64,000 nt of DNA from Macrostomum lignano (GCA_002269645.1 NIVC01000540.1:62001-126000); one strand, 5' to 3'; shown: positions 45,071 through 62,848, counted from the stretch's first letter. Program-made: numbers and translations. Notes: generated from the letters alone by a model not told the origin.

Positions 45071-47879
45071 ATGGGCGATTTGATGGCGGATTTGCAGACT
45101 CATTGATGCGCATGAGTTCAAATGAGACAAATATGAGACAGATCTGTTCTTATGCTTACCTTTCAATAATATCATTCAGTTTTAGAGTGAGGTGGGTGTT
45201 GCGGAGTGAGGTGGGTGTTGTGGAGTGAGGTGGGTGTTTGGAGTGAGGTGGGTGTTTGGAGTGAGGTGGGTGTTGTGGAGTAAGGAGGGTGTTGCGAAGT
45301 GAGGTGGGTGTTTGGAGTGAGGTGGGTGTTTGGAGTGAGGTGGGTGTTGTGGAGTAAGGTGGGTGTTGCGGAGTGAGGTGGGTGTTGCGGAGTGAGGTGG
45401 GTGTTGCGGAGTGAGGTGGGTGTTGCGGAGTGAGGTGGGTGTTGCGGAGTAAGGTGGGTGTTGCGGAGTGAGGTGGGTGTTGCGGAGTGAGGTGGGTGTT
45501 GCGGAGTGAGGTGGGTGTTGCGGAGTGAGGTGGGTGTTTGGAGTGAGGTGGGTGTTGCGGAGTGAGGTGGGTGTTGCGGAGTGAGGTGGGTGTTGCGGAG
45601 TGAGGTGGGTGTTGCGGAGTGAGGTGGGTGTTGCGGAGTGAGGTGGGTGTTGCAGAGTGAGGTGGGTGTTATGGATTGAGGTGAGGGTGCTGGAGGGTGA
45701 GGTGTGGGTTCTGGAGAGGGAGGTGAGGGTGCTGGAGGGTGAGGTGAGGGTGCTGGTCGAGTTTAGTGAGATACAGCGAGTGCTCTAAAATATTTAAGTC
45801 CATTAAGACATTATATTGTATTTCATTTTTAACCAGAAGTATGAGTGTTTATATTAAGCCGGCTCTTGTTACGCTTCTTGCACTAGACAGAATCCCTTGT
45901 TAAGCAATAATTTATTAACAGCACTTATGTAATATGAATAGAATTATGTTCAATCAAACTTGTTCGCAATCGCTGCCTGATAGAAAATACAACTCATGAA
46001 AAACAGCAGCTGGAATGCTCAAATCCGCATTGAAGCCTTGGAAGAATACTCTATAAGGTAATTTGATACCTCGCTAAATCTGCGTTCCTGTCTGAACTCA
46101 AGCGAATCTTACAGCCAGCATGCAAATCCTCTCACTGACTGTCTGTTCTTTGAAAAAAACACATTCGACGTATACTCGTGGAAGAGGAAGCACGAATCGA
46201 ATTGCCCTCATCTGATGACACCGAACTGAGCTGATGGGGCTTGAATTCAGTGAGCGATAAATTCTCAGACTCGGCTGTCAACCTGGCATGCGCCCTTTTT
46301 CAGGCTAAACTGGAGATAAAAACACGCAAAGTGCAGATCAACTGTTGAATAGCAAGAAAGGAGTGAGGTGGGTGTCTGGGAAGTGAGATGTGTGTCTGTG
46401 GAGTGAGATGTGTGTCTGTGGAGTGGAGTGGGTGTCTAGGGATAGAGATGTGTCTGTGGAGTGAGGTGGGTGTCTGGAGAGTGAGATGTGTGTCTGTGGA
46501 GTGAGGTGGGTGTCTAGGGATAGAGATGTGTGTCTGTGGAGTGAGGTGGGTGTCTGGAGAGTGAGATGTGTGTCTGTGGAGTGAGGTGGGTGTCTAGGGA
46601 TAGAGATGTGTGTCTGTGGAGTGAGGTGGGTGTCTGGAGAGTGAGATGTGTGTCTGTGGAGTGAGGTGGGTGTCTAGGGATAGAGATGTGTGTCTGTGGA
46701 GTGAGGTGGGTGTCTGGAGAGTGAGATGTGTGTCTGTGGAGTGAGGTGGGTGTCTAGGGATAGAGATGTGTGTCTGTGGAGTGAGGTAAGTGTCTGGGAA
46801 GTGAGGTGTGTGTCTGGGGAGTAAGGTGGGTGTCTGGGAAGTCAGATGGGTGTCTGTGGAGTGAGGTGGGTGTCTGGGGAATGAGATGTGTGTCTGTGGA
46901 GTGAGGTAAGTCTGGGGAGTAAGGTGGGTGTCTGGGAAGTGAGATGTGTGTCTGTGGAGTGAGGTAAGTGTATGGGAAGTGAGGTGGGTGTCTGGGGAGT
47001 GAGGTGGGTGTCTGGGAAGTCAGATGGGTGTCTGTGGAGTGAGGTGGGTGTCTGGGGAATGAGATGTGTGTCTGTGGAGTGAGGTAAGTCTGGGGAGTAA
47101 GGTGGGTGTCTGGGAAGTGAGATGTGTGTCTGTGGAGTGAGGTAAGTGTATGGGAAGTGAGGTGGGTGTCTGGGGAGTGAGGTGGGTGTCTGGGAAGTCA
47201 GATGGGTGTCTGTGGAGTGAGGTAGGTGTCTGGGGAATGAGATGTGTGTCTGTGGAGTGAGGTAAGTCTGGGGAGTAAGGTGGGTGTCTGGGAAGTGAGA
47301 TGTGTGTCTGTGGAGTGAGGTAAGTGTATGGGAAGTGAGATGTGTGTCTGTGGAGTGAGGTAAGTGTATGGGAAGTGAGGTGGGTGTCTGGGGAGTGAGG
47401 TGGGTGTCTGGGGAGTGAGGTGGGTGTCTGGGGAGTGAGGTGGGTGTCTGGGGAGTGAGGTGGGTGTCTGGGGAGTGAGGTGGGTGTACGATCTGGGGTT
47501 GAGAGTGCGAGATGATTTTTAAATATTTTCTTATAAATTGGGAAAGGTGTGCTTTCATTCGAACAACACCAAGTCAGACCGAACTACGCTAATCGTTTTT
47601 AACGTTAATAAACTTATCGAATACATAAACGAATAGATATATACGAGTATAAACTAAATCGCTTGCAGGTTTACGACTCATAAAACTGAGCTTAGGCATG
47701 CATAATTCAGTCGAAATATTTTATAGCCTAAAATCAGTTTCTTCCTTACTGATAGGTCGCAAGCTCGTCCCCGATCATCAGAGCTCACGCGGCTCAACGA
47801 AAACTGCAAAACTCAGTTTTAAGTTTTGGAAGTCAAAGTAAACTGCAAAGTATATATATAGATTGCTGCCTAATTAACA

Positions 47880-48850
47880 ATCCATTCTATTCCACCATCC
47901 ATGATTGGCTAGATTAGCAATCCATTCCATTCCATCATCCATGATTGGCTAGATTAGCAATCCATTCCATTCCATCATCCATGATTGGCTAGATTAGCAA
48001 TCCATTCCATTCCATCATCCATGATTGGCTAGATTAGCAATCCATTCCATTCCATCATCCGTGACTGGCTAGATTAGCAATCCATTCCATTCCATCATCC
48101 GTGACTGGCTAGATTAGCAATCCATTCCATTCCATCATCCATGATTGGCTAGATTAGCAATCCATTCCATTCCATCATCCATGATTGGCTAGATTAGCAA
48201 TCCATTCTATTCCACCATCCATGATTGGCTAGATTAGCAATCCATTCTATTCCACCATCCATGATTGGCTAGATTAGCAATCCATTCTATTCCATCATCC
48301 ATGATTGGCTAGATTAGCAATCCATTCCATTCCATCATCCATGATTGGCTAGATTAGCAATCCATTCCATTCCATCATCCATGATTGGCTAGATTAGCAA
48401 TCCATTCTATTCCACCATCCATGATTGGCTAGATTAGCAATCCATTCTATTCCACCATCCATGATTGGCTAGATTAGCAATCCATTCCATTCCATCATCC
48501 ATGATTGGCTAGATTAGCAATCCATTCCATTCCATCATCCGTGATTGGCTAGATTAGCAATCCATTCCATTCCATCATCCATGATTGGCTAGATTAGCAA
48601 TCCATTCCATTCCATCATCCGTAATTGGCTAGATTAGCAATCCATTCCATTCCATCATCCATGATTGGCTAGATTAGCAATCCATTCCATTCCATCATCC
48701 GTAATTGGCTAGATTAGCAATCCATTCCATTCCATCATCCATGATTGGCTAGATTAGCAATCCATTCTATTCCACCATCCATGATTGGCTAGATTAGCAA
48801 TCCATTCCATTCCATCATCCATGATTGGCTAGATTAGCAATCCATTCTAT
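47880..48850. repeat. 40-bp minisatellite (TCCATTCCATTCCATCATCCATGATTGGCTAGATTAGCAA), ~24 units
   Basis: Highly homogeneous tandem copies. Confidence 0.95.
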
Positions 48851-49424
48851 CATCCAACTCATGCAAACTCATCCAGCTAACATTACGCACTCAGATTATG
48901 CTGTAGCCCAGTGACACGGGGGGAAGGCCGCACAGGGCGGTGAGCAGTTCTTCCCGCCATCAATTAGTACAAAAATTTAGCTTCAGTTGCAGTCAGATAA
49001 GAATGTGCAGATAAAGATTGGATTGGCACAGGCTGGAGCTAACTTTGCTCAGCCATCTCGCTGCCACAGAAGGCTCTGTGCTGAATTCTGGATAAACGGT
49101 ATAGTCCATGGACCATTGTAGATACCAAATATGGATTAGAAACAGAAAATGTATACATATACAGATAAGGGACTTTTACACAGAAAAATAGCAAAAATAC
49201 TAGCAATCCGTGCCCCCGTTATGTATAAACTATATACAGCTTTTGACCTTATAAATTCGATATTGTAAGTGCCCTAATAAAAAAGATTTTTAAAGCAAAA
49301 AAGCATCAGCCCCGGGAGCCAGCTGTCTAGCCTAAGATATTAACATCCCTCATGAGCTTTGGCATCAACGCCTCCCTTTAAGACTTTTGCTTGGCCGACC
49401 AACAACTTCCAATTGACCCTTGAC

Positions 49425-50050
49425 ATCTCAGCAACCCCCTCCATGAGCCACAGCATCTCAGCAACCCCCCTCCATGAGCCACAGCATCTCAGCAACCCCC
49501 CTCCATGAGCCACAGCATCTCAGCAACTCCCCTCGATGAGCCACAGCATCTCAGCAACCCCCCTCCATGAGCCACAGCATCTCAGCAACCCCCCTCCATG
49601 ACCCACAGCATCTCAGCAACCCCCCTCCATGACCCACAGCATCTCAGCAACCCCCCTCCATGAGCCACAGCATCTCAGCAACCCCCCTCCATGACCCACA
49701 GCATCTCAGCAACCCCCCTCCATGAGCCACAGCATCTCAGCAACCCCCTCCATGAGCCACAGCATCTCAGCAACCCCCCTCCATGACCCACAGCATCTCA
49801 GCAACCCCCCTCCATGAGCCACAGCATCTCAGCAACCCCCCTCCATGAGCCACAGCATTTCAGCAACCCCCCTCCATGAGCCACAGCATCTCAGCAACCC
49901 CCCTCCATGAGCCACAGCATCTCAGCAACCCCCTCCATGAGCCACAGCATCTCAGCAACCCCCTCCATGAGCCACAGCATCTCAGCAACCCCCCTCCATG
50001 AGCCACAGCATCTCAGCAACCCCCCCTTCATGAGCCACAGCATCTCAGCA
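49425..50050. repeat. 30-31 bp minisatellite (ATGAGCCACAGCATCTCAGCAACCCCCCTCC), ~20 units
   Basis: Tandem copies. Confidence 0.92.
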
Positions 50051-50646
50051 ATTCAGACGGGTCCGCCCAAAACGTTCCTACAGCGCAGAGAACTGGACGC
50101 GGACAGACTCGCTCAAACAGCAAGCAGACGATTCGCATAGAGTGGCCGACGAACAAGTCACCAGTGCAGCACTCTATCGCCTCGTTTGTCCAGGCAACCT
50201 GTTGCACCGTCGGCGACGCTGCAGGCACCTCACCGGTGATGACAGGCTACTCATCGACTGCTGCGTACTGGCTGACGCCGATGCTGACGTCAGCAGAGCG
50301 CCCAAGCCTTGAGACGGGCCCTCAGACGCTGACATGTAGAAAAAAAATTAAGTTTCTACTCAACGCCCAGTCCAGTGAATTATCCAGGGATCCATGGATT
50401 ACCAAAGCCTTTCCCCATTGGCCAGTGCCGCTCGACGTCACCCCAGCGAGCCCAAATTGAAGCGGACTGCTAAAAGAAGATAAAACAGCCGCTGCCAGCA
50501 GCGCCAGCCGGGACTTTTGCAGCCGAGTGAAGAAAAGCAGAAACAGCTTTCTCAAGGGGAGAAAATCACAGCACTGCTGCTTCCCCTTATCCCGCATTGC
50601 TCAGGTTAACAGGGTTCGATCCGCAGTCCATCCAAAGGTCACTACA

Positions 50647-51950
50647 ATGCCATCAATTACTGACGGCAGCCTCACAGCCAAGCTAGCCGTCCATCTGCTG
50701 CTTCTCGTGCTCATCTCGATGCAGTGCAGCTGCTTTCACATCAACGAAGGTGAGGCTCTGGTTAGCTAGATGTTGGCTGTGGGATTTTGTTCCCAGTTCG
50801 AAATCTCAGCTATTGGGATATCTTCCCTTACATGTTCGTATTTGTTAATTGTTCCAGAAGCAGAGTGCGTGCAGATGTGCATATCAAACAGACTGCAGTG
50901 CTGTATACAGTCGCTGCTCAACTCTGTTCTTAAAGCTGCTGTTTAACTTGGACATGCGTGCTCTGGCTTAGCACCTTTGTGCCACCAGCTGCTGGGCAAA
51001 CATTTGCCTTCATTCTCCAATTTGATGTCTCTGAGGCGCGACACTTTTGGGGGTGGGACAATTTACTAATTTCTTATCACTTTATCGCCTCTACTGTGCC
51101 ACCTGGGCAACTTGGGCAACCAGGTGGCACAGACGGCCATTCAAAGCCAATTAAATTGTTTTCTAGGTAAAAGCAATTGAAATTGGTCGATTTTGGGAGG
51201 TCTGAAAATAATAATAACCAATTTTGATAATTTGGGTTCAGTAAACAAGACTGATTTGCCAATTGTCTGGCTTGACATTTTATTTACAGTAGCTTAATTC
51301 TCATCTCCTACTCACAGTAGTTAGCATTATAACAGAAAGTGCTAAAAATCAGTAATTTATTAGTAATTCTTTACAATAAGCTCGAATTCAGCTTAGGAAA
51401 GGGACTTCCAAATCTGTTCGGGCTCGATGGTTTTGTTTTAATCTTAAGAAACATCCGGTGATACTGGGCTAAAACAAACTGACTCATTTAAAAAAACTCG
51501 TAAAACTCGAAAGAAACTGACAAATGTCCGTTTCTGACCTTTTCAACTATGGCTATAAGGATTGTAGCTCCTTTATGGTTTTGCTTCATTTAAAACTCCG
51601 GTGTTAATGCATTTAAACAAACAGCAATCTCCGACTCTCCGACTACCATAGGCGCTGCTGACAAGGGGGAACAAAATTCTGATGGTATCGAACTCGACGA
51701 GGGAGGCGTCATCAGCATTGACGACGGCCTCCAGGACGGTCTTGGCAACCGCCTGCCAATCGGTCAACACCCTGCCAAGACTAAGCGCTTCATGTACCAC
51801 TCGAACGGCGACTGTCCAGTGTTCCGTGTCCAGTGTTTCAACAGCTACGACTGCTACAGGCAAACCGGCGACTACAACTTTCGCTGCGTGATGCACCGCT
51901 GCGCCGTCAGCTGCTTCGACATGCGGCCGTACATGAAGTCTACGAAGTGA
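50647..51950 (+). CDS. Secreted Cys-rich prepropeptide, copy A, 133 aa, unknown family
   Basis: Exon 1 50647-50749 (MPSITDGSLTAKLAVHLLLLVLISMQCSCFHINE, signal-peptide-like; GTGAGG donor); exon 2 51652-51950 (acidic spacer, KTKR, then FMYHSNGDCPVFRVQCFNSYDCYRQTGDYNFRCVMHRCAVSCFDMRPYMKSTK*). Phase-1 intron, open frame; all 6 Cys kept in the paralog. Confidence 0.82.
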
Positions 51951-52667
51951 CGCCCAAGTCCCATCTGGACTTCAAGCATTGCCTGCCGCGCAATGATGTA
52001 AAACTGCCACAACCGCTGCGTGCACTCATTGAGATCGGCACTTAATGAAAAATGCAAAACAAAATATAAACCGACTGTCGGGCTAATTCCTGGCTTTGGA
52101 ATGTCCTGACCGTCGGAAATCTTCAAGTGCAACAGTACTTAAAGAGCTTAGCAATACTTGGGTATTCATTTCCTCAATGAAAATAGTTGACTAAAACTCT
52201 TTTAATCGGTGAAATTTTGCCAATACTACCTAAAAAACTGTGCTCATAATTAACAACCGATTGCCATAGCAGCTCCATCACCATAGCAACTGGATGAGTT
52301 CAAAGCACGGCTTTATCACCATAGCAGCAAATATATTATGCGGAATGGCGATGCAACCAGTATATAATGCATCCTAAAATTTCATAGCACACCAATATTT
52401 CCCTCAACTTAATGGCCGGGCGTAACGCACTGACTGGAGGGTGAGTTTCAGAGCCGCTCGGGTCACGGATGCCTGAGACAGTCAGTCATAAAGCTCCGTG
52501 TCCATTCAGTCCCCGCGGGAATGGCGCGGACATTCGGAGTCATTTTTACTAGCTGACTGCCATTTCGGTGGGCTGAATCACGCAACTGGAGCAGCTGGGG
52601 AGATGGTAAATCTTCCTCAGGCTTTGACTGACCGACCGCACAGAGTGGATAAATAAAGTAATGAGTC

Positions 52668-53430
52668 TTGCACTGGGATACAAAGGCACTGGGATACTAC
52701 AAGGGCATTGAGATACAAGGGCACTGGGATACAAGGGCACTGGGGTACAAGGGCACTGGGATACAAGGGCACTGGGATACAAGGGCACTGGGATACTACA
52801 AGGGCATTGAGATACAAGGGCACTGGGATACAAGGGCACTGGGGTACAAGGGCACTGGGATACAAGGGCACTGGGATACAAGGGCACTGGGATACAAGGG
52901 CACTGGGGTACAAGGGCACTGGGATACAAGGGCACTGGGATACAAGGGCACTGGGATACAAGGGCACTGGGGTACAAGGGCACTGGGATACAAGGGCATT
53001 GAGATACAAGGGCATTGAGATACAAGGGCACTGAGATACAAGGGCATTGAGATACAAGGGCACTGAGATACAAGGGCACTGGGGTACAAGGGCATTGAGA
53101 TATAAGGGCATTGAGATACAAGGGCACTGGGGTACAAGGGCATTGAGATACAAGGGCACTGAGATACAAGGGCACTGAGATACAAGGGCATTGAGATACA
53201 AGGGCACTGAGATACAAGGGCACTGGGGTACAAGGGCACTGGGATACAAGGGCATTGAGATACAAGGGCATTGAGATACAAGGGCACTGAGATACAAGGG
53301 CATTGAGATACAAGGGCACTGAGATACAAGGGCACTGGGGTACAAGGGCATTGAGATATAAGGGCATTGAGATACAAGGGCACTGAGATACAAGGGCACT
53401 GGGATACAAGGGCATTGAGATATAAGGGCC
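52668..53430. repeat. 16-bp minisatellite (GATACAAGGGCACTGG/A) in the inverted-repeat spacer
   Basis: Tandem copies; source of the SQCPCIPVPLY ORFs. Confidence 0.92.
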
Positions 53431-54858
53431 CTCCTTAAAAGAAACTGGTGGCGCCACACCTGAACTCATCATCCAATCGACCATGCGCATTTGGCTATCC
53501 TAATCAAAGGAGGGAGGTGTTCACAGGGATTCTTCCCAGTCCAGGTGCATTTGCTCAGTCTCCAAGTGTCGGCTATACTTGTGGAGCAGATCAGCGGGAA
53601 GGCCGCTCTAGTGAATCATGTTTTGCTGCTCCATCTCGGGGGGGGGGGGCTACAGACGCCCCCAAGCGGGGGCTTTGCCAGTATTTCTGTCCTCCGAAAG
53701 CAAAATGGAAATCTCTTGTTTCGCCCCACTGTTTGCGCGACTTCTTAAATCAAAATCTAAGATCTCTCTACTCAATAGTATTTCTAAACGAACTTCATTC
53801 AACAGGCCTTGGTAAGAACTCCAGTATTTAATTAACATGGTCTTGTTAGCAGAGAGGAGAAAGGTAGATGAGATTCAGAGACTACCATGAAGAAGGGACG
53901 AGGCGTACTTGATTGAGTCGGGAATCAAGATGGGAAATGTAAAATTGATAAGAAAAGTCAGAAAAGTTTTACAATGCAATGAAATGAATTTTGAGAAGTT
54001 CTGAGATGGGAAAACAGTTGGTATGCGCGAGGGATCCTTGTAGATGATGGAAAGATGCTGGTAGATGGGGAACTTTGAGATGGGGTTGTTTTGAGTATTC
54101 TGTGGCTAAAATTTCTGGGTTGCTATTAAGATCTTTTGATGTTTAAAACGTCAGTTTTTTTAGTCTGTTCTGCAGTGCCTGGTATGTCCCTCTCTAGAGT
54201 GAAAGTAAAGCAGATCTTAGTGATTATTTAACTGCCTTTCAGATTTTTTTCTTGATTTTAAATCAAGTCGAGTAAAGTTTGAGTGAAGGTGATTTTTTAG
54301 AATCTTCACCTTTGATGACCGATATGCGAGTGATTTGGGTACAGGTCGAACGCTGACTTTCAATCTCTGATTGTTCATCTCTGGTCAGTGTCCTCAGTCT
54401 GAGAAGTGGCTTCTACATGACATTTCAATTCTAGAAAAAAGGTGGAGCAGATGCCAATGGAATTACAGAGCTGGAGAGAATAGCCAACTTTGGTGTCACA
54501 CCCAAGTGTCGTTCAATTCTCGAATCAAGTGCATGGCTTCATTCCCCTTTTTACTTTTTATTAATTTTCGTACAAGCGGAAGTCGTTAAAACTGTAGATT
54601 TTCAAAAAGTCGGTCAACTAACGAAGTTAAATTTTAGTACACAGAAGTTCTTATAATAGAAATGAATACCAAAGTATTGCTCAGCTCTTGAAGCACTGTT
54701 GCACTTGAAAATTTCCGGCGATCAGGACATTCCAAAGCCAGGTATCAGCTCGACAATTGATTGAGTTTTTATTTCGCATTTAAAGTTAGTTTGGATCTCA
54801 ATGAGTGCACGCAGCGGTTTGTGGCGGTTTTACATCATTGCGCGGCAGGCAATGGGCG

Positions 54859-56002
54859 TCACTTCGTCGACTTCATATACGGCCGCATGTCGAAACATCT
54901 GACGGTGCAGCCGTGCACAACACAGCGGTAGTAGTAGACACCGGTTTGCCTGTAGCAGTCGTAGCTGTTGAAACACCCCACACGGAACACCGGACAGTCG
55001 CCGTTCGAGTGGTACAAGAAGCGCTTACGATTATACTTGACGGTGCGTTGACCGTTTGGCAAGCGGTTGCCAAGGCCATCGCTAGCTCTGATGACGCCTC
55101 CTTCGTCGAGTCCGATTACGTCCAAATTTTTTTCTGTTTCGCCTTCGGTAGTCGGATAGTCGGAGATTGCTTTTTGTTTAAATGTACTTACACCGGAACT
55201 TTTTTTATTAAAACAAAACTATCGAGCCCGAACAGATTTGGAAGTCCCTTTCCTAAGCTGAATTCGAGCTTATTGTAAAGAATTACTAATAAATTACTGA
55301 TTTTTAGCACTTTCTGTTATAATGCTAACTACTGTGAGTAGGAGATGAGAATTAAGCTACTGTAAATAAAATGTCAAGCCAGACAATTGGCAAATCAGTC
55401 TTGTTTACTGAACCCAAATTATCAAAATTGGTTATTATTATTTTCAGACCTCCCAAAATCGACCAATTTCAATTGCTTTTACCTAGAAAACAATTTAATT
55501 GGCTTTGAATGGCCGTCTGTGCCACCTGGTTGCCCAAGTTGCCCAGGTGGCACAGTAGAGGCGATAAAGTGATAAGAAATTAGTAAATTGTCCCACCCCC
55601 AAAAGTGTCGCGCCTCAGAGACATCAAATTGGAGAATGAAGGCAAATGTTTGCCCAGCAGCTGGTGGCACAAAGGTGCTAAGCCAGAGCACGCATGTCCA
55701 AGTTAAACAGCAGCTTTAAGAACAGAGTTGAGCAGCGACTGTATACAGCACTGCAGTCTGTTTGATATGCACATCTGCACGCACTCTGCTTCTGGCAAAA
55801 TTAACAAATACGAACATGTAAGGGAAGATATCCCGATAGCTGAGATTTCAAACTGGGAATAAAATCCCACAGCCAACATCTAGCTAACCAGAGCCTCACC
55901 TTCGTTGATGTGAAAGCAGCTGCACTGCATCGAGATGAGCACGAGAAGCAGCAGATGGACGGCTAGCTTGGCTGTGAGGCTGCCGTCAGTAATTGATGGC
56001 AT
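54859..56002 (-). CDS. Secreted Cys-rich prepropeptide, copy B, 128 aa
   Basis: Exon 1 55900-56002 (same protein sequence as copy A exon 1); exon 2 54859-55142 (GETEKNLDVIGLDEGG...YNRKR, then FLYHSNGDCPVFRVGCFNSYDCYRQTGVYYYRCVVHGCTVRCFDMRPYMKSTK*). Confidence 0.82.
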
Positions 56003-57419
56003 TGTAGTGACCTTTGGATGGACTGCGGATCGAACCCTGTTAACCTGAGCAATGCGGGATAAGGGGAAGCAGCAGTGCTGTGATTTTCTCCCCTTGAGAA
56101 AGCTGTTTCTGCTTTTCTTCACTCGGCTGCAAAAGTTCCGGCTGGCGCTGCTGGCAGCGGCTGTTTTATCTTCTTTTAGCAGTCCGCTTCAACTCGGATT
56201 CCGACACTAATCGATTTGATAATAATCAGGCAGCGGGTAAAAGTATCGTGTTGGGAGAAATTCGAACTAAGGCACATTTCCCTTTTTACCGATTTCTTTA
56301 AGAATAGTGAATATAAAACTAATGAGTTTATGGAGTGAAAAATTTGTCCTGAAATTGGCTCATTGGGGGATAAACAAGTGGCAGGTAAAATCATGTTGAA
56401 ATATTTTGAGCTAAATAACTCGCCATTTTTCCCATTTTCTTCGGGAAAATATACGAATATTCCCAAACGATGAATTCTGACGTACAAATAGGATTAATGA
56501 GATCGGGAAAAATTCTGTCCGGAAAGTGGTTTACTGAAGATTCAGCAAGCAACAGGTAAAAGTATCGTATCTGAAGATTTTTGTCAATTTCTTTGCGAAT
56601 AATAATTATAGGACAAATGGGATTATAAAGGTCGTGAAAAATTCAATCCTGAAAACCACCTTTCTTGAAATCTGGTAGTTAGGGATTTTACAAATGGGAA
56701 TAAAGCTGGTAGATAAGGGGGACGTTGTACGATCTAAAATTTTTAAATCATTCGAATCTTTGAGGCTAAACAATTTTATAACAAGTCGTCATCAAGTTAT
56801 ATTGCTTGCTTGCTTTCATAAGCTCAAACTTTAACATAGTCAAATCCTGCTACGAGTTTGTTTGAGTTCGTTATTTATTGGTCACCTCCGCTAGCTCACC
56901 ACTGAAGCAAACTCGAGGAAGTGTAAAGTTTTGAGCCTGTGAAAGCGACAATGTAAATAGGAAAGTGGAAAGTCGTCGAAGCCGAAAATATTAATTTGTG
57001 TAAAAAGCTTATAAGATAAAATTATGTTAATTAAATATGAACGGGATAATGTATAAAACTTGGATATTCAATCACTATATGTTAGATCAAGACCAGGAAT
57101 ACTTTTCAGGCAATTTTTCAACCTCTGATGAAGCTTAGGAGAGCTAGTATAGAGTCTTAAACTGCAGTCAGCTATAGTCTAAGCAGACTTAGCAAATAAA
57201 GTTGGCCAAGAAAGTCAAATAAAGAATGAGAGGGAAAGGATCGGATGCGTGGGCAGGTTGCCAAAGGCTTTCTAACTTCGAGTATGAAAATCAATAAATC
57301 TTGCTTGTTTGCAAGATCAGCGAGCGCGGCCTCCCCAAGCATTTACTTACCGCGACCTCTGACCTGCCAATCACCTGATCTTGCCGACTCAAGAGAGATC
57401 GTGTCGTTTGAGCGGCTAA

Positions 57420-58690
57420 TTAGAATTGCTCAGCGGGTCTCAGACTCAATAGGGAATTGCTCAGCCGCCTCAGACTCAATGGGGAATTGCTCAGCCGGTC
57501 TCAGACTCAATAGGGAATTGCTCAGCCGCCTCAGACTCAATGGGGAATTGCTCAGCCGGTCTCAGACTCAATAGGGAATTGCTCAGCCGCCTCAGACTCA
57601 ATAGGGAATTGCTCAGCCGCCTCAGACTCAATGGGGAATTGCTCAGCCGGTCTCAGACTCAATAGGGAATTGCTCAGCCGGTCTCAGACTCAATAGGGAA
57701 TTGCTCAGCCGCCTCAGACTCAATGGGGAATTGCTCAGCCGGTCTCAGACTCAATAGGGAATTGCTCAGCCGGTCTCAGACTCAATAGGGAATTGCTCAG
57801 CCGCCTCAGACTCAATGGGGAATTGCTCAGCCGGTCTCAGACTCAATAGGGAATTGCTCAGCCTGCCTCAGACTCAATGGCGAATTGCTCAGCCGGTCTC
57901 AGACTCAATGGGGAATTGCTCAGCCGCCTCAGACTCAATGGGGAATTGCTCAGCCGGTCTCAGACTCAATAGGGAATTGCTCAGCCGGTCTCAGACTCAA
58001 TAGGGAATTGCTCAGCCGCCTCAGACTCAATGGGGAATTGCTCAGCCGGTCTCAGACTCAATAGGGAATTGCTCAGCCTGCCTCAGACTCAATGGCGAAT
58101 TGCTCAGCCGGTCTCAGACTCAATGGGGAATTGCTCAACCGGTCTCAGACTCAATAGGGAATTGCTCAACCGGTCTCAGACTCAATAGGGAATTGCTCAG
58201 CCGGTCTCAGACTCAATGGCGAATTGCTCAGCCGGTCTCAGACTCAATGGCGAATTGCTCAGCCGGTCTCAGACTCAATAGGGAATTGCTCAACCGGTCT
58301 CAGACTCAATAGGGAATTGCTCAGCCGGTCTCAGACTCAATGGGGAATTGCTCAGCCGGTCTCAGACTCAATGGGGAATTGCTCAACCGGTCTCAGACTC
58401 AATGGGGAATTGCTCAGCCGGTCTCAGACTCAATGGGAAATTGCTCAACTCAACCGGTCTCAGACTCAATAGGGAATTGCTCAGCCTGCCTCAGACTCAA
58501 TAGGGAATTGCTCAGCCGCCTCAGACTCAATAGGGAATTGCTCAACCGGTCTCAGACTCAATGGGGAATTGCTCAGCCGGTCTCAGACTCAATGGGGAAT
58601 TGCTCAGCCGCCTCAGACTCAATAGGGAATTGCTCAGCCTGCCTCAGACTCAATGGGGAATTGCTCAGCCGGTCTCAGACTCAATGGATG
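57420..58690. repeat. 30-31 bp minisatellite (GGGAATTGCTCAGCCGGTCTCAGACTCAATA), ~40 units
   Basis: Tandem copies. Confidence 0.93.
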
Positions 58691-59999: not shown

Positions 60000-61878
60000 T
60001 CAGGGGGCATAGTCAAACTTGAACACCGTAGCCTGGCTGTACTTCGATCCGGGCGTCAGTAGTGACGACGGAAATTCCGGATGGTTGAGCGAGTCGGGAT
60101 AGAGCTGGGTCTCGAAGCACAGGCCAGCGTGGCGGCTATACTGGCAGCCGCCTTTGCCAGGCACCGAGTCAATGTAATAGCCGGTGTAGAACACCAGCAC
60201 TGGCTGGTCAGTGCGGCAACTCAGCCTCCGGCCGCTGCTCAGCTCCTCGGCAACTCCGGCAGCTGGTGCCGATTCGTCATCAACCGACTGACCAGAGGCC
60301 GAGTCTAACACGTAGATGTGATCAAAATTGATGCCGTCAGACAGTTTGCGGCCGGCGCCGCGAAGGTCGGACGGCGTGCCATCGACGGGCAGTACGCGGC
60401 CAGTGGGCAGCAGCTCGGCGTCCAGTTCGATCAGACGGGAGCTGGCAAGCTGCCAAAAGTGGGGATAGGGTAGACTGGATGATGAGGCTGTTTGGGATTG
60501 GGGAGGTTGGATGGTGAGGCTGGATAATGAGGCTGTTTGGGGATCGGGGAGGCTGGATGATGAGGCTGTTTGGGGATCGGGAGGCTGGATGGTGAGGCTG
60601 TTTGGGGATCGGGGAGGCTAGATGGTGAGGCTGAATAGTGAGGCTGCTTGGGAATAAGGGAGGTTGGATGATGAGGCTGTTTGGGGATTGGAGGCTGGAT
60701 TATGAGGCTGTTAGCGGATTAAAGAGCATGGATGATGAGACAGCATAGGATTCGGGAAGTTAGATGATGAGGATGTTTGAGGGCCGTTTGGGGATTGGGG
60801 ACGCTGGTGATAAGGCTAGCTACATACATGCGCAACCCCAGATTCACACTGGCCGTGCGAATTACTTTTTGACCAAAAATTGGACTTGCCTGTGAAATGA
60901 ACCTAGAGAAAAATTAATGCAATTTTTGGTAAACGGCAGGAGTAACTCGGTGGTCTTATTAAGGCTAAAGGCCTCGTCATCTAATTAGTACTACGTCTAT
61001 TTTTTCGGGCTGGCCTTTTTGCGACTTACCTTGGCTGGGACCCTCGCCAGCCGGCCGGGTGTTGCGCATGTTTGTGAGGCTGTTTGGGATTAAATAGGCT
61101 GAATTGGGAGACAGTTTGAGGATCTGGGAGGCTTGGTGATGAGACTATTTGGTGATGAGGTCTGACGAGCTAGGACTTCTAAAAAGATTGGCGGCTGCTA
61201 ATTCAGTTATCAATAATATTATCAACTAGGCCATCCTTAGGCTTAAGTCCCTCCGCATAAGCGCAGTGAATTCCGAACCTGGACTCGATGATTGGAGACG
61301 TCACCGGACGAGTGGCCAGACAGATTGAAGTAGGCGTGATTAGTGAGGCTCACTGGACACGGTCGGTCGCACTCGGCCGAGTAGTTCAACCGCAGACTGT
61401 TGTCATTAGAAACTGTGTAGGTGACGGTGACGCGCAGGTTGCCAGGGTAGCCATCTTCGCCGTCCTTGCTAAGCAAGCTGAGCGTGACGGAGTCCTCGCC
61501 CAGATTGTCAATGTTCCACACTGCTCTGGTGAGTCCGCGCTCGCCGCCGTGCAGACTGTGCCGACCGTGATTGCGAGTGACGCTAACGGGTTGATCGCCG
61601 CCAGGCAAGCTGAACTGGGCGTCCTTGACTCGGCCTGGCTGGCGTCCAACAACAAAGCCGAAGTAGCACGGACAGCTCTCGTAGCCTTGCACCGTGTCGT
61701 AGCCGAGCACGACGTCGGTTGGGGGGTCGCACGGGTTGCGCGAAGGGCAGTAGAGACTTTGCAGAGCGGCACCATAGGTCAGCACGTGGGCCTCGAAGCC
61801 GCCAGGGCTGCGCAGTACAATCTTTTGAACTTCGCGACCGTCACTTGTACGGCCGAATAGTTCGGACACGGCTACCAT
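60000..61878 (-). CDS. GALM: Aldose 1-epimerase / galactose mutarotase, 2 exons, 349 aa
   Basis: Exons 61279-61878 and 60000-60449, phase-0 GT-AG intron; motifs DVVLGYD, SLHGG, GYPGNL, SLTNHAYFNL, FDH, GLCFETQLYPDSLN. Confidence 0.93.
60470..60800. repeat. Degenerate TGATGAGGCTGTTTGGG minisatellite in GALM intron
   Basis: Tandem diverged copies; core resembles the reverse complement of the 3180-3620 repeat. Confidence 0.7.
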
Positions 61879-62848
61879 TTGTAATGCTTATTAAATGATG
61901 CAGCAGGAAGATGTGGCAAAAAGGTGGAGAGCATTCATCAAATAAAAAGGTAAATTATTGATTGGACAAGGCGGAAAGAAAGACAGATGCCGATTTTTAT
62001 GGATTTAGAGACAGCCTCGGATATACAGAACTAAACATACACGAATACACAATTATCAATGGATAAAAGTACTTCAATAAGGACTTAGCTCATAAAGAAT
62101 TGCTAAACTCTTTGCAGACAAACTTAATTTGTTTCTCAGCTTGGTGACTTAGTTTCCGCTCAGACAAGGCTCTGCATTTTTGAGGCTGTCTTTACAGCAG
62201 ACAAAAATCGCAAGCAGCTCATCAATCACCGCAGTATTCAAATGCGTTGGGAATTCCAGCGACGCAAGGGAATTCAATTTCCTAGGGTAGAAAGTGAAGC
62301 AATCTTATTACGCGGGTGCTAATTTAGAGCCACGTCTGCTTTCGAAGAGTGGACGAAGGATCCGCTCGCATATGTTTCGAATTCTCAAGAGTTGTATGTA
62401 CACTAGCCACTCTGCACATTGCCTCAAAGCGAGACCAAATTTCTGCAAATTCCACTGCCTACACCTGAGCAAGCTTACAAGCAGTTGGGTGCTTATTTAG
62501 GCACACGTACACATAAATATACGCTCGTACATCTGCCCTCGACACTGACACTTGCATCACGAATTTGACTTTCTGTGCCTCAGATCGTGAACAGTACATG
62601 TATACATGAAGAATGTAAACTGTGACCCGTAAAAATTTGGTCTGGCATTCACCCATCAGATTATTCGACATCTCTGAATTTAGTAATGAACTAATTTTTC
62701 ATTGGCTCTCAGTTGAAAGAAAAAAACGTGACAAGTCTCTGGTCTAAGCCAATGATCACACCGCAAAGAGCTTAAGTTTCGCCTCAAAATAGGCTGAGCC
62801 AAATTTCCTAAAATAATTCTCCCTTAGACTGTCACAAAAACAACTAAG

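Follow-up and report, generated by a model that had tools for sequence, protein, structure and literature searches.

What do two short genes that face each other on a contig of the flatworm Macrostomum lignano encode, and do their products belong to any known class of secreted peptide? The genes lie in a window of 64,000 nucleotides (positions 62001 to 126000) of contig NIVC01000540.1 from the M. lignano assembly Mlig_3_7 (GCA_002269645.1); this whole stretch was analysed, and coordinates below are counted from its first letter. An initial annotation had described a convergent pair of two-exon genes, each with a hydrophobic leader, a KR dibasic site and a 53-amino-acid mature peptide with six cysteines, and had proposed a new toxin, defence or signalling family. 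Reading of the sequence and spliced translation confirmed this layout and every coordinate given for it: gene A (50647-51950, plus strand) and gene B (56002-54859, minus strand) form a mirror-image pair with two exons each. We consider it probable, at roughly 60%, that A and B are paralogous members of an orphan M. lignano family of cysteine-rich prepropeptides that are secreted and processed.

Structure and annotation of the two genes

Gene A starts with an ATG at 50647 and yields a spliced product of 133 amino acids. Its first coding exon (50647-50749, plus strand) encodes the leader MPSITDGSLTAKLAVHLLLLVLISMQCSCFHINE and the first base of codon 35, and is followed by a phase-1 intron of 902 bp (50750-51651) of the GT..AG type, with donor GTGAGG and the acceptor AG at 51650-51651 (CCATAG/GCG, the slash marking the splice site). 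The second coding exon (51652-51950) comprises a pro-region, the sequence K-T-K-R (KR codons at 51783-51788), the mature peptide and a TGA stop codon at 51948-51950. The predicted mature peptide A (51789-51947) has 53 amino acids, six cysteines and a net charge of +3: FMYHSNGDCPVFRVQCFNSYDCYRQTGDYNFRCVMHRCAVSCFDMRPYMKSTK.

Gene B, with its ATG at 56002, encodes 128 amino acids, or 125 if splicing takes the next in-frame AG, at 55133, as acceptor. Its first coding exon (55900-56002, minus strand) is string-identical to that of gene A. The GT..AG intron (55143-55899, 757 bp) has the donor GTGAGG, and its acceptor CCGAAG/GCG at 55142 is homologous to that of gene A. Exon 2 (54859-55142) encodes a pro-region, R-K-R (KR codons 55026-55021) and the mature peptide, ending in a stop codon at 54861-54859. 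The predicted mature peptide B (54862-55020, minus strand) likewise has 53 amino acids after KR and six cysteines, with a net charge of +4: FLYHSNGDCPVFRVGCFNSYDCYRQTGVYYYRCVVHGCTVRCFDMRPYMKSTK.

Both mature peptides have the framework C-x6-C-x5-C-x10-C-x4-C-x3-C. They differ at nine residues, and these had been said to fall mostly between the third and the sixth cysteine; seven do, which corresponds to 7/17 non-cysteine sites in that segment compared with 2/30 elsewhere (Fisher p = 0.007). The hydrophobic core of the leader, LAVHLLLLVLIS, has a mean Kyte-Doolittle value of 2.79 in both genes, their first exons being identical, and the -3/-1 rule, applied as a heuristic, permits cleavage after Cys29. 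The spacer between leader and dibasic site had been described as acidic in both genes. By residue counts this applies to gene A (about -5), whereas in gene B the first half of the pro-region is acidic and the overall charge is about +1.

A TATA-like A/T box, CTAAAAGAAGATAAAA, is located at 50470-50485 (plus strand), just 5' of the annotated transcript start of gene A at 50500, and its mirror copy for gene B is found at 56164-56179. We infer a promoter role for both boxes. CAG sites stand immediately before the annotated 5' ends (50496-50498).

The pair had been called unannotated. This is correct for gene B and with respect to a prokaryote-style list of open reading frames, but not for gene A, which is present in GenBank as BOX15_Mlig017203g3 (PAA81298.1, 'hypothetical protein, partial') and also in UniProt. 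The splice junction of PAA81298.1 (our entry P0001) is identical to that of gene A, and the sole difference is a translated extension into the 5' untranslated region (UTR), up to 50500. The label 'partial' reflects a 5'UTR without an in-frame stop codon and not a truncated gene. The GenBank models of Mlig_3_7 were built from RNA-seq data with StringTie and TACO, together with a de novo transcriptome, and their open reading frames were called with TransDecoder; transcripts at least 95% identical received the same name prefix (PMC5730564). Copies of gene A on three contigs correspond to the models g1, g2 and g3. Since the gene A model is derived from RNA-seq, the junction 50749/51652, for which a check against RNA-seq had been proposed, has transcript support. 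Transcription and splicing of gene A can therefore be taken as shown. In an older UniProt model (P0003, 1437 amino acids), gene A is joined to an upstream TRPM2-like channel gene via 50049-50333.

Evolution of the inverted pair

The A/B pair is present on three contigs (L001, L002 and L003), with open reading frames, KR sites and cysteines intact in all six gene copies. The M. lignano assembly is highly redundant (PMC5730564), and the three loci are probably duplicated genome copies.

Similarity between the two genes is distributed unevenly. An arm of 986 bp, with the core promoter, the 5'UTR, exon 1 and the greater part of the intron, is 99.29% identical between gene A (50457-51442, plus strand) and gene B (56192-55207, minus strand). 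In contrast, the last part of the intron together with exon 2 and the 3'UTR (51597-52172 on the plus strand and 55197-54659 on the minus strand) have diverged to 79% identity in this window. The boundary between the two regimes is marked by a stretch of 154 bp in the gene A intron (51443-51596) that gene B does not have. Across the three loci, A and B are 99-100% identical in the leader half and 77-90% identical in the peptide half. In the leader arm a single one of 28 variable sites separates the A copies from the B copies, compared with 65/95 in the peptide half, and at seven leader-arm sites the A and B genes of one locus have a variant in common that is absent from another locus. Such a pattern is characteristic of repeated gene conversion that is limited to the 5' arm and superimposed on an older inverted duplication.

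For the mature peptides of A and B we obtained a synonymous divergence (dS) of 0.38 and a non-synonymous divergence (dN) of 0.08, corresponding to a dN/dS ratio (omega) of ~0.2; among the A copies, omega was 0-0.1. These values argue for purifying selection on the coding sequence. The conservation of the leader is explained by conversion of the whole arm including the intron, rather than by selection on the leader alone. Arm-wide conversion and a dN/dS of ~0.2 together indicate that the combination of a conserved leader and a variable peptide does not result from toxin-style diversifying selection. The differences between the two mature peptides are those of an old duplicate under purifying selection and do not amount to toxin-like diversification.

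Paralogs and tests against known families

A profile built from the exon-2 products of both genes was used to scan 1.84 billion representative proteins in full with HMMER. Beyond A itself, four real matches were obtained (P0008, P0010, P0011 and P0012), all of them from M. lignano, at a sensitivity at which these paralogs scored only ~40 bits; a further entry, P0009, was a low-complexity false positive. The matches define three additional gene groups: Mlig006190 (117 amino acids, E 1.8e-12), Mlig025436 (92 amino acids, also present as a 5'-extended duplicate entry) and Mlig004136 (92 amino acids). The family thus consists of five sequence types, A, B, Mlig006190, Mlig025436 and Mlig004136. Word-indexed searches of 5.8 billion proteins returned M. 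lignano entries only, and a search with a short family alignment gave four candidates, none of them new.

The paralogs are 36-52% identical to A and conform to the motif K-R-F-[LM]-[YF]-x-S-x-G-x-C-x6-C-F-x3-D-C-x9/10-C-x4-C-x3-C, in which K, R, F, S, G, the six cysteines, F and D are invariant. In every paralog, as in A and B, the leader occupies its own exon and is followed by a phase-1 intron. The other members lie on separate contigs among unrelated neighbours, and none has an inverted partner within ±8 kb. Every type has a hydrophobic core of 12 residues (mean Kyte-Doolittle 2.35-3.28) among its N-terminal 25 residues and, by the same heuristic as above, sites that fit the -3/-1 rule. Although the pro-regions cannot be aligned, K-R directly precedes F-[LM]-[YF] in all paralogs. 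The four residues before the mature peptide (P4-P1) read KTKR, NRKR, ISKR, RAKR and AYKR across the types, so that the dibasic site stands in a K-x-K-R context in A and in R-x-K-R in Mlig025436. Net charges of the mature peptides are +3 (A), +4 (B), +5 (Mlig006190), -1 (Mlig025436) and +1 (Mlig004136), and counts from the sequences revealed no consistent balance of charge between pro-region and mature peptide across the family.

Two short matches were noted in the pro-regions. A tripeptide FH[IV] follows the predicted signal-peptidase site and precedes the phase-1 intron both in A/B (QCSC/FHIN, 50719-50733) and in Mlig006190 (VFVGG/FHVG, at about 8070-8090 of locus L004), and 'GLG' is common to the A/B pro-regions and Mlig025436 (DGLGNRLP and AGLGELAGP). 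Both matches may be what is left of a common pro-region or of a second processed product.

The coding sequences are more than chance open reading frames, as judged from their presence on three contigs, a dN/dS of ~0.2, and three further paralog groups with the same framework and intron position. In the literature searched on antimicrobial, ShKT, neuropeptide/prohormone or cysteine-rich secreted proteins of Macrostomum, no description of the family was found. Nor does the family occur in the list, given in full in PMC7336406, of genes whose in situ patterns have been published, which contains 192 occurrences of Mlig0 identifiers.

Names already assigned to family members in UniProt raised the question of whether the peptides belong to an established domain class. 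Some A-type entries carry the automatic name 'BPTI/Kunitz inhibitor domain-containing protein', and across the family one and the same domain is named inconsistently, as 'Kunitz' in P0006, P0007, P0012 and P0015 and as 'ShKT' in A0A267DLA0 (P0010), which suggests weak, cysteine-driven profile matches. In Pfam searches at E<=10 with the A and B precursors, the mature peptides, P0008, P0010 and P0011, no Kunitz, ShK, WAP, defensin or toxin family was matched. The hits were sub-threshold noise (Nodulin_late, DUF5332, DUF5556 and VF530), among them P0008 against Nodulin_late, the family of plant nodule-specific cysteine-rich peptides, with E 1e-3 and 19.7 bits compared with a cut-off of 30.4 bits. 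Sequence searches of the PDB with a single peptide and with the family profile gave no match, the best being an LDL-receptor repeat (E 2-9) and nitric oxide synthase (E 1.2). In hhalign comparisons the family profile reached 4.3% with BPTI, 0.15% with ShK and 0.65% with a WAP profile that, as a control, retrieves all WAP entries in the PDB. The cysteine spacing had been described as that of no named family, and the Pfam and PDB profile searches agree.

Kunitz domains (PF00014) have the spacing C-x8-C-x15-C-x7-C-x12-C-x3-C and the signature F-x2-{I}-G-C-x6-[FY]-x5-C (PS00280). The five types have the spacing 6/5/10(9)/4/3 and the signature was absent from all of them, so that, with no Pfam match at E<=10 and 4.3% in hhalign, we rejected this assignment. 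ShKT domains (PF01549) end in C-x3-C-x2-C and have an all-helical fold; this class was rejected on a C-terminal C-x4-C-x3-C, a predicted beta-hairpin, the lack of a Pfam match and an hhalign value of 0.15%. Neither UniProt label is supported by Pfam, hhalign or cysteine spacing. Membership in the WAP family (PF00095) was rejected on six cysteines rather than eight, the lack of a CC pair, no Pfam match and 0.65% in hhalign. Cysteine-stabilised alpha/beta defensins were rejected as well: a search for CxxxC...CxC was negative in all five mature peptides, and noxiustoxin was matched with E 9.9.

AlphaFold2 modelled the mature domain, from an alignment of only eight family sequences, with a mean predicted local distance difference test (pLDDT) score of 76.9 and ~90 in the core; with A and B alone and the pro-region included, pLDDT was 38. 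The predicted fold consists of a strand (residues 17-19), a helix (24-31) and a hairpin (36-41/44-49). A Foldseek search of the PDB with this model gave no significant structural match. The top four matches were all WAP domains, the half-SLPI-trypsin complex 4doq_B first, then elafin and omwaprin (twice), at non-significant scores for an eight-sequence model (E 0.46-3.6, probability 0.14-0.41, template modelling score 0.37-0.48, root-mean-square deviation ~9 Å). A loose resemblance to a WAP motif missing one disulfide had been proposed at the outset. These four matches agree with it, but they are non-significant, the hhalign value is low and the membership features fail; the WAP likeness is a lead only, a resemblance and not membership.

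Proposed function, rival explanations and comparison with known systems

On the reading that we prefer, that of secreted and processed prepropeptides, the leader would send the precursor into the secretory pathway, where a convertase of the furin or proprotein convertase type would cleave after KR and free a C-terminal peptide of 48-53 amino acids. The freed peptide is predicted to fold as a compact strand-helix-hairpin mini-protein with three disulfides. A and B would be isoforms that have one leader and one core promoter in common and differ at the surface of the Cys3-Cys6 hairpin. Conservation within the family is highest at the N-terminus that cleavage would expose and in the first two loops. 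Because these are conserved while charge varies from +5 to -1, we think that the peptide most likely acts by binding one particular protein outside the cell, be it as ligand, modulator or inhibitor, rather than by charge-driven membrane lysis. More tentatively, and with less than even confidence, we suggest that the five types represent an undescribed three-disulfide fold family, restricted to Macrostomum or to flatworms and possibly a reduced WAP, of extracellular ligands or effectors.

Several observations weigh against this reading. The GenBank annotation contains no model of gene B at any of the three loci, the B protein was not found in the collection of 5.8 billion sequences, and direct transcript evidence for B is likewise lacking. 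The two B alleles differ by four non-synonymous and one synonymous substitutions, tiny numbers that fit relaxed constraint. Short, divergent homologues from other animals may have escaped the HMMER scan, and Macrostomum species represented by transcriptomes only may be absent from the searched library. The identifiers of the four gene groups were not found in the supplements of PMC5816591, PMC5946080, PMC7336406, PMC5730564 and PMC12896417, of which large tables were only partly covered. The fold prediction depends on a very small alignment. Finally, the most similar members (A, B and Mlig006190) are all cationic (+3 to +5), and an acidic pro-region before a cationic peptide, as in A, is the classic layout of defensin-type antimicrobial peptides.

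This last point leads to the rival explanations. A and its relatives might be defensin-like or WAP-like host-defence peptides from epidermal, gut or gland cells, with a pro-region that masks the cationic peptide until cleavage. The cationic subgroup (+3, +4 and +5) and the acidic pro-region of A (about -5) make an antimicrobial role a serious rival, and the predicted topology resembles that of cysteine-stabilised alpha/beta peptides. The top Foldseek matches (SLPI, elafin and omwaprin) are WAP domains, a class that has antibacterial members; the family was found in M. lignano only, as is often the case with immune effectors; and P0008 has its sub-threshold match to Nodulin_late. We nevertheless regard host defence as unlikely, since charge is not conserved (-1 in Mlig025436 and +1 in Mlig004136), conservation resides in specific N-terminal residues instead, omega is ~0.2 with no expansion past five types, the WAP matches are non-significant in Foldseek and weak in hhalign, and the CxxxC...CxC signature is absent. 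That the domain is a reduced Kunitz-type or WAP-type protease inhibitor is improbable. The automatic names of four UniProt entries (P0006, P0007, P0012 and P0015) and the trypsin complex 4doq_B as the best Foldseek match favour it, as do the motifs C-P-x5-C, x-D-C and C-x3-C-F, which by eye also occur in elafin. However, neither Kunitz nor WAP is matched in Pfam at E<=10, the spacing is 6/5/10/4/3 and not the 8/15/7/12/3 of Kunitz domains, the PS00280 pattern is absent, hhalign values are low for both BPTI and WAP, and the disagreement between ShKT and Kunitz labels points to weak profile matches driven by cysteines. A venom or toxin peptide for prey capture or deterrence is very improbable. 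A conserved leader joined to a diverged mature exon is superficially conotoxin-like, and the A/B differences are concentrated in the Cys3-Cys6 loops. Yet the leader is explained by gene conversion of the 5' arm including the intron, omega is ~0.2 in a small family, and no toxin family was matched by Pfam, PDB sequence or Foldseek searches. M. lignano is a small diatom feeder, and no venom apparatus is known to have been described in it. Of the toxin, defence and signalling roles proposed initially, the evidence singles out none, and nothing positive speaks for a toxin.

Two further alternatives concern the genes rather than their products. Gene A alone may be functional, gene B being a silent or decaying duplicate whose 5' half is kept intact-looking by gene conversion. 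The missing models, the missing B protein and the 4:1 ratio of substitutions between B alleles are in line with this. However, exon 2 lies outside the converted tract and has kept its open frame, KR site, six cysteines, acceptor and tail at three loci; A-versus-B omega is ~0.2 over a dS of ~0.38; and the core promoter, 5'UTR and leader are the same as in the transcribed gene A. The missing model of gene B is itself weak evidence, because the annotation dropped transcripts that overlapped repeats or had fewer than 0.5 reads per kilobase per million mapped reads (RPKM <0.5; PMC5730564). Taken together, we think that a silent gene B is doubtful. An inverted pair with arms 99.3% identical might also be an assembly artefact, such as a palindromic chimera, which is a known artefact of long reads. 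However, three independent contigs have the same arrangement, each locus with differences of its own, identity drops to 79% between the peptide halves, and the ~2.9 kb between the stop codons (51951-54858) are largely non-palindromic. The three loci and the non-palindromic spacer exclude an assembly artefact.

The surroundings of the pair are rich in repeats. The spacer between the two 3' ends contains a tandem array of the 16-bp unit GCACTGGGATACAAGG (52670-53429; ~47 copies, 90% matches) and a run of ~13 G at 53639-53651. Upstream of gene A, on the same strand, are the exons of a TRPM2-like cation channel gene (33697-45040, plus strand, and 50049-50333); at the sister loci this gene encodes LSDAT, TRPM2, Ion_trans and NUDT9 domains and is listed at L002 and L003 but not at L001. 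Minisatellite arrays with units of 22, 20, 19, 20, 40 and 31 bp fill the region between the channel gene and gene A (43449-50051), for example at 46360-47487 (20 bp x 57), 47873-48847 (40 bp x 24) and 49424-50051 (31 bp x 20). Upstream of gene B are a 31/92-bp array (57423-58687) and, on the same strand as gene B, an aldose 1-epimerase gene (PF01263, 349 amino acids; 60000-61878, minus strand). Each peptide gene is therefore located downstream of a same-strand neighbour. In M. lignano, polycistronic precursor transcripts are resolved by spliced-leader trans-splicing (PMC5730564), so it is conceivable that A and B are transcribed as downstream cistrons. Further away, the near-perfect microsatellites (AGT)117 (11097-11446), (ATAG)298 (26306-27497) and (AGAT)304 (32459-33672) and a 27-bp x 55 array (15719-17217) explain why the window has blocks of low GC and, locally, a strong GC-skew.

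If the five types do form such an undescribed fold family of ligands or effectors, the A/B locus would represent a simple route to co-regulated peptide isoforms: conversion would keep promoter, leader and intron identical, while a sharp intronic boundary would free the peptide exons to diverge. The locus is a clean natural case of partial concerted evolution in an inverted gene pair. Gene A was already known as a hypothetical protein; new are the orphan family outside curated families and gene B, an unannotated paralog at all three copies of the locus, and the 'Kunitz' and 'ShKT' labels in UniProt are corrected. M. lignano is a transgenic, regenerating flatworm model, for which we found no described antimicrobial peptides and very little on peptide hormones in the searched literature. 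For early-branching flatworms, the five types may provide a practical entry to the study of secretory cell types, of innate defence or of signalling by peptides, with peptides short enough for chemical synthesis and five targets for in situ hybridization and RNA interference. We consider the importance of these findings moderate, as they address no long-standing open question.

How does the family compare with known systems? Kunitz and ShKT domains likewise place six cysteines in a short secreted domain, and the order of short and long loops is loosely ShKT-like; the spacing differs from both, and a predicted hairpin contrasts with the all-helical ShK. WAP proteins (elafin, SLPI, omwaprin and nawaprin) are likewise small secreted cysteine-rich domains, of ~45-50 amino acids, and local similarities to the family are the C-P-x5-C at the start, an x-D-C that precedes a short helix, and the hairpin ...C-x3/4-C-x3-C-F at the C-terminus. 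The hairpin segment is the only one that hhalign aligns, and the family, with two cysteines fewer than the eight of WAP domains, has no CC pair in the centre. Defensins (of the cysteine-stabilised alpha/beta, beta- and big-defensin types) have precursors with a signal (putative in the family), a pro-region, a dibasic site and a six-cysteine peptide of ~40-50 amino acids, a layout in common with the family, whose predicted topology is likewise strand-helix-hairpin, and the ranges of beta-defensins cover the spacing of its first five cysteines (6/5/10/4). The family differs from them in having neither CxxxC...CxC nor a terminal CC and in its non-conserved charge, and the sole Foldseek match of this kind was noxiustoxin, with E about 10. 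Precursors of the crustacean hyperglycaemic hormone/ion transport peptide (CHH/ITP) type consist of a leader, a precursor-related peptide, KR and a single C-terminal six-cysteine peptide. Although the M. lignano family has no sequence similarity to them, differs in cysteine spacing, lacks an amidation signal, yielded no orthologue from any other species and has a predicted fold that is not all-helical like that of CHH, its precursors have the same architecture, with conserved residues after the cleavage site and purifying selection.

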